Positions 21,718 through 24,898 of a stretch of DNA of 39,340 nt are shown piece by piece. This DNA is from Macrostomum lignano. Taxonomy: Eukaryota. The stretch is from assembly GCA_002269645.1 (NCBI GenBank), contig NIVC01000165.1, positions 1 through 39,340 of the forward strand, written 5' to 3'. Each line of letters begins with the position of its first letter. The stretch's first letter is position 1. Made by a program: the position numbers and the translations under genes. The notes under the pieces were generated by a model. That model did no database searches. It was not told the DNA's origin and saw nothing but the letters and a program-made list of their open reading frames with translations.

Positions 21718-24700
21718 ATGGAGAAAGTGCAGAAGCATGGAAGTGAAGCTACCGAGTCAGCTGGTTCCAGTTTTTTTGTGGTGAGTACAAATATGTTTAT
21801 TCCTGAAGATTGGCGACCCTATTCCACTTTAATAACTCGGAGATCCCAGATCGGAGATCCCAGATCGGAGATCCCAGATCGGAGATCCCAGATCGGAGAT
21901 CCCAGATCGGAGATCCCAGATCGGAGATCCCAGATCGGAGATCCCAGATCGGAGATCCCAGATCGGAGATCCCAGATCGGAGATCCCAGATCGGAGATCC
22001 CAGATCGGAGATCCCAGATCGGAGATCCCAGATCGGAGATCCCAGATCGGAGATCCCAGATCGGAGATCCCAGATCAGAGATCCCAGATCGGAGATCCCA
22101 GATCGGAGATCCCAGATCGGAGATCCCAGATCGGAGATCCCAGATCGGAGATCCCAGATCGGAAATCCCAGATCGGAGATCACAAAAGACAGCAGACCCA
22201 TTGAAGAGACACTAAGCATACCTTACTAAAGGATACACAGACAAGAGATCAAAATGAGACAGCAGAACCCACAGAAAAGGCATAGGATACAAACCTCAAT
22301 TTAGGGAATTGACAATCCCAAAATACTCGCACCAGTCCCAGAAAGAGATGCAGCAGCTAGAAGATTCAGTCCGAACTCTCGCTTTCATTTCACGCAGACT
22401 CGCGCAGAAGCCACCAGCCAGAAGCAGCAATCCAAAACAGTGCAGAACAGAAGCACCAAGGAGGAGCCAGGCGACGAGGATCAGTTCTTCGACGCTTTGG
22501 AAGCTCCTTGTAAATATTCGGGCGATGCCAGCGGTGCGTCAGCACCGCCGCCTGCTGTCGAACGTCCGCTGCAGTCTCTTGAACACCCGTTAGCCCAAGA
22601 GATTCAAGCTGTCTGTCGGGCGCACTGGGACAGCTGGGGCGCCAGCACCGACGGCATGGAGCTGCTGGAATCCGACGGACTGCTGCGGGTGTACCGGCAT
22701 CGACTGGCTCAGTCAGGTTCGCGATGGTGTCGATGGTTGCCAACTATTCGGCACATGATCAGACTTTCTAATCGTCAAGCACGTATTCTACTGGCCAATT
22801 TTTTAGCACAAGCCCACACCCCAAAATGAATGTGTCAGCGCACCGAATCAAACCAGGGGTCGTGGCGCGGGGTCGCCATCATAAGCGCGCACTGGCACAA
22901 GCGCGCCTGTGTATTTTATGTCAAAGTCTGGCACAGGCGCGCAGAGACATAAGCGCGCACGTTTTGACTTGCACAAGAGCGCGGTAGAAAGTGCTCAGCA
23001 TTGGCATAGGCGCGCACCATCACAAGACCGCACTGGCATAAGCGCGCAGTCAAAGTTTGGCACAAGCGGGCAATGCAATAAATAAAAGCAGTCAAGTTGC
23101 TCCATCGTCTGTCACAAAGTAGTCGATTGTATCTGTACGAAGGAAATCGAATTAAAATTAAAAATTAAAATTAAAATTAAAGGCCGTGTCCCGGCATGTC
23201 TGGCTGCAAGTCGTGGTCTGGCTGCTGATGATGATCCAGCAATCCATCAGCAATGTGCGACGTCAAAGTGACCAATGCGCAGAAGGTTAGAGGCATAAAA
23301 AGTTCGCGTGGATCGCAGCAGTGACTTTCTTCGTGCGCCGTCTGATGCGCCGACTGTCTTCACTGCAAATGCAGTCGTCACGGAACGAGTCGAGTCTCAG
23401 CACACCATCCTTCTCGACGGCGCGTCCCGGACAGTTCTTGTTAGTGCAGCGATAGCTGACTGTCCCATTTCTAACTTCTATCTTCCCGATAAATGTAGAC
23501 GCCGTGCGTATAGACTATGATGAGCCGATTCTTTTCCCTTCGATTGGCTCCGTTGCGTTTCAAACACTCCAACTGCGACTGAGACTGAGTGCGTCTTATT
23601 TATCTAAGTCGCAGTATCTATCGACAGTGTACATGCTTAGAATTGTGCCAACTGTGCCTCTGTTTACACCCTAACCCACCACCCTTGTGCACTACAGCTT
23701 TGATTAAAATTTTTCTACACTATCAAGTCAGTCGCCAAATAAAGTGCGCGCTTGTGCCTTAGAGAGTAAATAATGCGCTCTTGCGCCAAAGTCTGACAGC
23801 GCGCTTATGCCACAGCGTGTCAAAAGTGCGCGCCTCTGCCAGTGCGCGCTTGTGCCGGTGCGCGCCTCTGCCAGTGCGCGCTTGTGCTGCTGCGCTCTTG
23901 TGCCGGTGCGCGCCTCTGCCAGTGCGCGCCTCTGCTAGTGCGCGCATGTGCCGCTGAGAGAGTCGGGCTAGTCTTCCTCAGGATCAGATTGCATGGGCTG
24001 GCACCAAGATGCACCTTGCCTTTGTGCACAAATTAGGCTATTGTCGGTCTCAAAATTATGCAATACTGGCTATTAAAGAAATATTTTTATACATGTATTT
24101 TGATTTACCTCTCGAATTTAACAAGTTATTGGTAGCACTTACATGTACCGGTTCGTATTAGCGAATAGAATAGAATAGAATAGAATAGAATAGAATAGAA
24201 TAGAATAGAATAGAATAGAATAGAATAGAATAGAATAGAATAGAATAGAATAGAATAGAATAGAATAGAATAGAATAGAATAGAATAGAATAGAATATAA
24301 TATAATAGAATAGAATAGTACATAGTACATCTGTACCTCCACTTAAGATGCCGCACTGGATCCTGTCCTTGCCACTTACACGGTTACCGGGGTGACGGCT
24401 CACGAAGTGGCCGAGATGTTCTGGAATCTGCAGTACCGCCTGGACTGGGAGCGAACTCTGGACTCGGCCCCGATCGTGCTGGACACCCTGGCCTCGGACA
24501 CCCTGCTGCTGCACCAGATCTACAAGCGACTGTGGCCGACAGCTCAGCGCGACTCGGTGTTCTGGTCGCACATTCGGCACGCCGAACAACGGACGATGGT
24601 TGTGAACTGCAGCACGGAGGTCGGGGCGCCGCCGCTGGCTTCGGGCAGGCAGCGGATGCAGCTGAATGTGAGCCTGATCTGCGAGACCGAACTGCCAGAG

Positions 24701-24898
24701 GGTGGCCGTCTGCCAACAGAGCGAAGTCAGCTGCGCTGCCGGATGCAGTACTCGGCGAGGGTGCACCCTGGAGGCTGGGCGCCCAAAGCCATTATCAGGC
24801 AGGTGTCCAGACGCGAGTACCCGAGATTCCTGAGACGCTTTGCTGCATTCTGTGTGGAGCGCGTCAAGCACCAACCGGTCTCTCATTGTGTTCAGTGA
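21718..24898 (+). CDS. CERT paralog with FFAT and START domains only (no PH domain found), 3-exon model, about 310 aa
   Basis: Exons 21718-21780 (ATG...GTG|GTGAGT), 22398-22716 (TTTCACGCAG|; EDQFFDALE; [21 protein letters not shown]) and 24348-24898 (complete START, stop TGA). The phase-1 intron sits at the same position as in the full-length copy. 933 nt, in frame. The first exon is the least certain part, and the donor at 22717 (GTTCGC) is weak. Confidence 0.8.
21838..22180. repeat. 14-bp tandem repeat CGGAGATCCCAGAT, about 24 copies
   Basis: Inside predicted intron 1 of the PH-less CERT paralog. Confidence 0.96.
22875..23952. mobile_element. Foldback-like element: inverted arrays of GGCACAAGCGCGCACT-type motifs around a non-coding core
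   Basis: About 22875-23070 carries GGCACAAGCGCGC/GGCATAAGCGCGC motifs, and about 23740-23952 carries their reverse complements (GCGCGCTTGTGCC/GCGCGCTTATGCC). Exact termini and TSD not found. Confidence 0.5.
24164..24318. repeat. (AATAG)n microsatellite, about 30 copies
   Basis: Just upstream of the paralog START exon acceptor. Confidence 0.97.

Follow-up and report, generated by a model that had tools for sequence, protein, structure and literature searches.

A tandem CERT paralog lacking the PH domain in Macrostomum lignano: a candidate ER-anchored ceramide carrier

Introduction

CERT (STARD11/COL4A3BP) is the textbook example of lipid transfer by a protein that links two organelles, with a PH domain directed to phosphatidylinositol 4-phosphate (PI4P) at the Golgi and an FFAT motif directed to VAP at the endoplasmic reticulum (ER). 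Here we describe a gene of the free-living flatworm Macrostomum lignano (positions 21718-24898, forward strand, of contig NIVC01000165.1, assembly GCA_002269645.1) that lies downstream of an intact CERT gene and has kept an FFAT-like motif and a complete START domain but no PH domain. The stretch analysed (positions 1 to 39,340, the whole contig) is called the window throughout, the intact CERT gene the parent and the shorter gene the paralog. We consider it rather probable that the paralog is an old partial tandem duplicate of CERT which is transcribed, held under selection and encodes an ER-anchored, PI4P-independent carrier or buffer of ceramide; its binding to VAP and to ceramide, and with them its cellular role, are predicted from conserved motifs and residues.

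The START domain alone binds ceramide, and CERT mutants without PH domain and FFAT motif transport ceramide inefficiently (PMC8705978). Short and long forms recur among lipid-transfer proteins (PMC3261905). Like the paralog, ORP9S and ORP4S combine an FFAT motif with a lipid-binding domain in the absence of a PI4P-binding PH domain, and a long form with the PH domain coexists with them (PMC4177916). PH-less ORP9S keeps its FFAT motif, is found off the Golgi and exerts dominant effects that depend on VAP and FFAT (PMC4177916). However, these short forms are transcribed from a promoter inside the gene of the long form, and their ORD fold binds sterol and PI4P, whereas the paralog, a gene apart that arose by duplication, has an exon 1 of its own, a START fold and ceramide as the predicted ligand. 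STARD4/5/6 resemble the paralog in being soluble proteins of essentially one START domain, but they bind sterol and have no FFAT motif, and their structural match to the paralog in Foldseek (E ~1e-10, 10-16% identity) is far weaker than that of CERT START (1e-22, 34%).

The paralog has the same START subtype as CERT (34% identity to human CERT START, TM-score 0.86-0.91), the same ceramide-coordinating and membrane-inserting residues, an FFAT-like motif equally far upstream of START and, compared with the adjacent 586-aa parent, its last intron at the same position and in the same phase. CERT has in addition a PI4P-binding PH domain, a serine-repeat motif and a central coiled coil. The paralog, in contrast, has a novel 42-aa N-terminus that stems partly from its own first exon, a Q instead of E at position 1 of the FFAT motif and, relative to the parent, an almost wholly rewritten linker between FFAT and START. 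Its START subtype, its pocket and its FFAT motif make it a member of the CERT family; lacking the PH domain as well as the serine repeat and coiled coil, it is filed here as a truncated CERT paralog and not as 'a CERT'. The gene itself was already in GenBank as a nameless protein, and what is new is its recognition as a natural PH-less CERT variant. The first-pass annotation of the window, which saw in it a candidate for an undescribed system, therefore overstated the case, since the gene already stands in the databases as a hypothetical START-domain protein and several other animals have predicted PH-less CERT-like genes.

Origin by partial tandem duplication

The locus bears out the idea of a tandem paralog, with an intact CERT gene on the same strand whose stop codon lies 3 kb upstream.

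14401..18656, + strand: parent full-length CERT, 586 aa, with PH domain, canonical FFAT motif EFFDAVD (17255-17275) and START domain

The parent has five coding exons (14401-14625, 14809-14945, 15234-15621, 17027-17495 and 18115-18656, with the stop codon at 18654-18656), its reading frame is intact and its exon 1 gives a PH match. Over more than 90% of its length it is 40-44% identical to mollusc, annelid and brachiopod CERT, and is therefore a true CERT. Its alignment with the paralog starts at about aa 43 (EEPG) of the latter, runs to the end and reaches 78% identity over the FFAT motif and START domain. Since the last intron interrupts both genes at the same position and in the same phase (phase 1), the paralog is the product of a partial tandem duplication of genomic DNA and not a retrocopy.

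The same gene order, namely a 965-972-aa gene (-), the PH- and START-containing CERT (+), a START-only gene of 310-324 aa (+) and a transglutaminase gene (-), is found in the window and on two further contigs, NIVC01000006.1 (1.1 Mb; locus L001) and NIVC01001740.1 (243 kb; locus L002). The tandem is thus not a misjoin, and the divergence between parent and paralog within each contig greatly exceeds the divergence between contigs, so that the two are not collapsed or mis-joined haplotypes. Of the assembly objection raised in the first pass only the part concerning redundant copies holds: the window is 95-99.8% identical to NIVC01000006.1, and its contig probably holds the L001 locus a second time. 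Such redundant copies are expected in this assembly (Mlig_3_7), in which 180 Mb lie in blocks at least 95% identical (PMC5730564).

The parent carries no GenBank annotation on the window contig, and it is annotated on both sister contigs with 584 and 575 aa. These models begin downstream of the equivalent of the window's ATG, which suggests that they are 5'-incomplete, and at L001 the codon equivalent to the ATG at 14401 reads AAG, such that the true start codon of the parent may lie elsewhere. A second full-length CERT lineage of M. lignano (UniProt A0A1I8G9U5) is closer to the canonical form, having a clear serine-repeat motif and the FFAT core EFFDAID; its deposited model ends short of the last START exon. 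With the CERT of the window it shares about 66-70% identity (70% in the region from FFAT into the N-terminal part of START). M. lignano consequently has at least three CERT-type genes.

Gene structure and transcript support

A three-exon, in-frame model of about 310 amino acids had been proposed from the sequence, and it stands: its introns have GT-AG borders, it ends in a TGA stop codon at 24896-24898, and its 310-aa translation matches GenBank PAA89094.1 (UniProt A0A267GUH9; BOX15_Mlig000945g2) residue for residue. The database name of the latter is 'START domain-containing protein', Macrostomum lignano. The features of the gene are as follows.

21614..21620, + strand: candidate TATA box, TATATAA, read from the sequence, 98-104 nt upstream of the ATG
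21667..21669, + strand: TAG stop codon, in frame with the start codon and 17 codons upstream of it
21718..21780, + strand: exon 1, aa 1-21, novel N-terminus MEKVQKHGSEATESAGSSFFV; ATG, GTGAGT donor
21781..22397, + strand: intron 1, mostly a 14-bp minisatellite (21837-22181, 24.6 copies)
22398..22716, + strand: exon 2, aa 22-128, with diverged linker, FFAT-like motif and N-terminal part of START; CAG acceptor, GT donor
22482..22502, + strand: FFAT-like core QFFDALE, aa 50-56, within GDEDQFFDALE, aa 46-56
22717..24347, + strand: intron 2, phase 1, with an inverted repeat (22928-23072 / 23774-23938) and a (GAATA)31 array (24163-24318)
24348..24898, + strand: exon 3, aa 128-310 and stop, most of the START domain; AAG acceptor

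Because of the TAG at 21667-21669, no in-frame start precedes the ATG at 21718, and an in-frame N-terminal extension through the contiguous 5' region is excluded. Both the TAG and the TATATAA are conserved at all three loci, and the TATATAA lies ~55-60 nt upstream of the annotated transcript 5' end at L002, where the paralog is annotated as 5'-partial and starts at the equivalent of position 21676. The TATATAA is probably the paralog's own promoter element, and together with the upstream TAG it fits an independent promoter. Exon 1 is part of the GenBank coding sequence at each of the three loci. When exon 1 and the promoter were compared with the parent and with any repeat inside the window no similarity was found; the short N-terminus is novel, as the first reading had it. 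Exon 2 is homologous to parent exon 4 from ~17246 onward, and exon 3 shares 91% identity over 521 nt with the last exon of the parent. Intron 1 varies in length among the three loci (617, 743 and 2208 nt). A search of the 700 nt downstream of each stop codon, in parent and paralog alike, turned up no canonical AATAAA or ATTAAA.

The Mlig_3_7 annotation was built only from StringTie assemblies of RNA-seq reads and a de novo transcriptome, with gene boundaries set by spliced-leader and poly(A) reads and open reading frames called by TransDecoder (PMC5730564). As the annotation was built from transcripts, the deposited coding sequence, including exon 1 and both splice junctions, reflects transcripts, and the earlier objection that the gene might have none falls away with this match. 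An exact-match look-up of the paralog and related sequence returned GenBank contigs only, with no spliced transcript contigs, and the locus tags were found neither in the papers searched nor in the supplements of one of them.

Domain content and predicted fold

Pfam detects a single domain in the paralog protein, START (E 2e-17), with no match to a PH domain, and a sequence search of the PDB returns CERT START domains only (E 6.5e-46). That no PH-coding sequence lies between the parent's stop codon (18656) and the paralog was confirmed by a tblastn search for a PH remnant with the first 325 aa of the parent, which found none in 18657-24347 (best match E 0.55). There was no PH-like tblastn match elsewhere in the window either, where the best chance-level matches (E 0.014-0.02) involve the coiled-coil or middle part of the query. 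As homology between the two proteins begins only at about aa 43 of the paralog, residues 1 to ~315 of the parent have no counterpart in the paralog, which has no PH domain, serine-repeat motif or central coiled coil.

The FFAT-like motif GDEDQFFDALE is present as first described. Its core sits behind EEPGDED, and the six residues upstream (EPGDED) have a net charge of -4, more acidic than the flank of the parent, which scores -2 under the same scheme. Six of the seven core positions are canonical, the sole departure from EFFDA-E being E1->Q, and F51, D53 and A54 are invariant in an alignment of 35 CERT sequences. Within the motif position 1 is the one under least constraint, and E1->Q is a natural, tolerated variant (PMC3261905). 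By this resemblance the motif is predicted to dock on VAP.

In an AlphaFold2 model built with 34 CERT homologues, aa 1-80 have pLDDT (predicted local distance difference test) values of 42-61 and are probably disordered, whereas aa 81-310, mostly at 84-97, are predicted to form a helix-grip START fold. Foldseek against the PDB gives CERT START for all of the top 19 matches (TM-score 0.86-0.91, E ~1e-22), and STARD10, the family that follows, scores ten orders of magnitude worse (E 4e-12). From crystal structures of human CERT we take R442, E446, Q467, N504 and Y553 to be the ceramide-coordinating residues and W473 and W562 to be the membrane-inserting tryptophans. The equivalents of all seven are conserved in the paralog (HMMER alignment to 5zyg/2e3m), and its R158, W190, N214, Y262 and W271 fall in columns that are invariant across the 35-sequence alignment; Y482 (human numbering) is F in both parent and paralog. 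The START domain is therefore complete, as the first-pass annotation had held, with a confident predicted fold closest to CERT START and the CERT-invariant pocket residues kept, and the paralog is predicted to bind ceramide.

Gene conversion, selection and a rewritten linker

The most prominent feature of the comparison between the two genes is a tract of near identity in the last exon.

24403..24783, + strand: gene-conversion tract, paralog side, 379/381 positions identical to parent 18170-18550
18170..18550, + strand: gene-conversion tract, parent side, 381 bp, paired with 24403-24783

The tract has 2 mismatches in 381 positions against 36% mismatch in its flanks (binomial P(<=2 mismatches) = 3e-70). 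Its boundaries are the same at all three loci, and the conversion thus predates the divergence of these loci. Most of the ceramide-pocket and membrane-insertion residues fall inside it, where parent and paralog are 99.5% identical.

Outside the tract, 100 START codons can be compared. The proportion of synonymous differences (pS) is 0.68, which is saturated (dS >1), the proportion of nonsynonymous differences (pN) is 0.17, and omega is ~0.1, from which it follows that the duplication is old and the protein sequence conserved. Among the recent copies of the paralog there are 6 nonsynonymous and 7 synonymous changes, where the neutral expectation is ~3:1 (p = 0.02; pN/pS ~0.3), and the copies of the parent show a similar pattern. 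The open reading frame and GT-AG sites are intact in all three paralog copies, with no frameshift or stop. On these substitution patterns the paralog is under purifying selection and not a pseudogene, in agreement with the earlier judgement that the intact frame spoke against decay.

The linker tells a different story from the pocket, having been largely rewritten after the loss of the PH domain. With A0A1I8G9U5 as outgroup, the stretch from FFAT into the N-terminal part of START has 21 paralog-specific against 4 parent-specific changes (chi-square 11.6), that is, it evolved ~5-fold faster in the paralog than in the parent, yet the FFAT core was kept. We take the retention of the core within a fast-changing linker to reflect selection acting specifically on the motif. 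In a comparison with 15 distant CERTs, the paralog was only mildly more derived than the parent (13 against 7 sites), a difference that is not significant.

Proposed role and alternative explanations

The history that we propose begins with a duplication that would have copied only the 3' part of CERT, with its FFAT motif and START domain, to which a first exon and probably a TATA promoter of its own were added. The product would be a 310-aa cytosolic protein in which a disordered N-terminus of ~80 aa presents the FFAT-like motif, followed by a CERT-type START domain of ~225 aa whose ligand pocket gene conversion would keep identical to that of the parent. Through its FFAT motif the protein would dock on VAP at the surface of the ER, where START would extract ceramide. 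Lacking PH domain, serine-repeat motif and central coiled coil, it would neither be targeted to the PI4P-rich membranes of the trans-Golgi nor be subject to the phosphorylation loop that switches CERT off. Such a protein should act as a constitutive carrier or buffer that hands ceramide to any membrane near the ER, and its occupancy of VAP and ceramide would damp or re-route the flux through full-length CERT. The paralog would then amount to a 'short isoform' fixed as a separate gene.

Several observations weigh against this reading. Gene conversion by itself would preserve the pocket without selection on the paralog, and the evidence for selection consequently rests only on the ~100 flanking codons and the 13 recent substitutions; the pairwise omega, moreover, blends the lineages of parent and paralog. 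The transcript support for the paralog depends on how the GenBank annotation was made. The paralog replaces residues that are invariant in other CERTs (E125A, G128D and K282R), and its copy at L002 (NIVC01001740.1, L002 10043-14965) has E48K among the acidic residues flanking the FFAT motif as well as R163P. A search for close relatives at 90% clustering returned the M. lignano cluster alone, with no ortholog from another Macrostomum. We note separately that R163P adjoins the ceramide-binding E162, and the L002 copy may be a weakened allele or copy.

A first alternative would be that the paralog is a non-functional, decaying partial duplicate which looks intact only through repeated gene-conversion repair from the parent. 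The recent conversion tract indeed makes up 41% of the paralog coding sequence (381/933 nt), the linker and N-terminal part of START changed ~5-fold faster than in the parent (21 vs 4 changes), and some otherwise invariant CERT residues have been replaced. However, outside the tract synonymous sites are saturated while pN is 0.17 and omega ~0.1, none of the three copies has a frameshift or stop, splice sites and intron phase are intact, the FFAT core has survived in a fast linker, the recent copies have a pN/pS of ~0.3, and a transcript model exists, all of which render decay highly improbable. A second alternative concerns transcription, as the exons could form an alternative 3' end or read-through of the upstream CERT, or a downstream cistron resolved by spliced-leader trans-splicing. 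The genes are on the same strand and 3 kb apart, the locus tag of the window copy ends in g2, multi-gene transcriptional units are many in M. lignano, whose spliced leader ends in ATG (PMC5730564, PMC8629364), and in two fusion models of UniProt/WormBase ParaSite, A0A1I8HCG3 (686 aa) and A0A1I8GA77 (775 aa), paralog exon 2 is attached to the parent. These fusion models, though, bypass the parent's stop through a cryptic donor just before it and skip paralog exon 1, and one of them translates a 33-bp minisatellite (20402-20744) as protein (LWVSEGLWLVQ repeats), which is typical of ab initio artefacts; we regard both 'tandem START' entries as artefacts of gene prediction. The transcript-derived GenBank models begin with exon 1 on all three contigs, an in-frame TAG stands in the contiguous 5' region with a TATA box upstream of it, and at 3 kb the spacer is longer than the 1 kb taken as the criterion for operons in M. 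lignano (PMC8629364). The first-pass concern that the parent's PH exons might be spliced onto these exons fails likewise, as the TAG at 21667-21669 blocks their in-frame joining to exon 1 through this region. We hold this alternative to be quite improbable, and co-transcription with trans-splicing would still yield a PH-less protein.

A further alternative accepts function and questions its sign, the paralog being mainly a negative regulator or sensor that sequesters VAP sites or ceramide, or reports ER ceramide, with no net transfer. PH-lacking CERT constructs are inefficient in ER-to-Golgi ceramide transport (PMC8705978), PH-less ORP9S acts dominantly in an FFAT-dependent manner (PMC4177916), and the acidic flank of the paralog's FFAT motif (net -4 vs -2 in the parent) would favour competition for VAP. 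Against it, the tryptophans that insert into membranes and are needed for lipid exchange, W473 and W562, are retained in START. Regulator and carrier are mutually compatible and inseparable by sequence, which is in keeping with either net effect, so that the paralog may transport or inhibit; as the main function, regulation seems to us unlikely. More tentatively still than the ER-anchored ceramide carrier that we favour, one could suppose that a PH-less CERT was fixed as a gene with a job other than ER-to-Golgi delivery, be it a VAP-anchored supply of ceramide to membranes other than the Golgi or a brake on CERT flux, with conversion holding the pocket while termini and linker were free for new targeting or regulation. 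We put this forward as a possibility, and a somewhat doubtful one.

With one address label lost and the rest kept under selection, the paralog would offer a ready-made in vivo experiment on an ER-only ceramide carrier. RNA interference is routine in M. lignano. Transgenesis is established in the animal as well (PMC5730564). The locus is also a clean case of mosaic evolution after partial duplication, in which conversion homogenises the ligand-binding core and the linker and termini diverge rapidly, and its analysis shows two 'tandem START' entries of M. lignano in UniProt to be prediction artefacts.

PH-less CERT-like proteins in other animals

Homologues were sought with HMMER among 1.84 billion cluster representatives, which returned many short CERT-like matches. 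Predicted short, PH-less CERT-type START proteins match the paralog with E-values of 1e-33 to 1e-41 and include the following.

Trichinella (12 named species/genotypes): 263-275 aa
Cichlid fishes (RefSeq): 300 aa
Globodera: 271-284 aa
Allacma fusca: 326 aa
Pollicipes pollicipes, XP_037084860.1: 400 aa

No FFAT motif was seen in the sequences of Trichinella, cichlids, Globodera and Allacma. The copy of Pollicipes is a stand-alone gene like the paralog, yet has only a weak FFAT-like motif (EFCDALA), and the motif of the paralog is better than any in these proteins. The proteins of other animals are probably independent events in distant lineages, and some of them may be incomplete gene models. 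We found no papers on the PH-less CERT-like proteins of Trichinella, cichlids, Globodera, Allacma or Pollicipes. If it is true that the scattered nematode, fish and arthropod genes act alike, they would constitute a recurrent and unrecognised class of ceramide handlers.

The Pollicipes protein is named 'ceramide transfer protein-like' (JAAVLY020001045.1, L005 9944-11650), lies inside a single open frame of 568 aa and adjoins an EZH2-like gene. It may be a retrocopy-type PH-less CERT of independent origin. The short CERT-like match P0031 (275 aa, from an environmental contig) has stops upstream in all frames. P0008, the most similar match that starts just upstream of FFAT, was rejected as a PH-less example, being the C-terminal open reading frame of a full-length CERT transcript that a stop or frameshift interrupts.

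Genomic neighbourhood and repeats

The window contains the following further features.

26179-32338, - strand: transglutaminase gene, 722 aa, with Transglut_N, core and C domains, convergent with the paralog
2853-7285, - strand: gag-pol of long terminal repeat (LTR)-retrotransposon type, a 1268-aa frame with aspartyl protease, reverse transcriptase, RNase H and integrase
16601-16967, 17538-17977, 21837-22181 and 24163-24318: intron satellites of the two CERT copies, respectively (TGTC)92, a 15-mer x29, a 14-mer x25 and (GAATA)31

The transglutaminase is the conserved downstream neighbour on all three contigs. A 300-aa frame that bears a CCHC zinc knuckle comes before the gag-pol frame, and the element appears largely intact. 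Two long frames at 34827-36808 (-), one of 318 aa and one of 257 aa that includes a poly-Asn run, had no Pfam match.

The introns of both CERT copies are full of near-perfect micro- and minisatellites, of which (GAATA)31 ends just 29 nt ahead of the acceptor of the paralog's final exon. The inverted repeat in intron 2 is imperfect (73-76% identity over ~75-120 nt, arms ~700 nt apart) and may represent the ends of a small foldback or MITE-like (miniature inverted-repeat transposable element) element. Finally, a 21-bp minisatellite with the unit GCACTCATTTTAGCGCCACAG occurs between the CERT copies (20858-21139) and again near the right end of the contig (37955-38764), the two sites being judged one family from their identical repeat translations.

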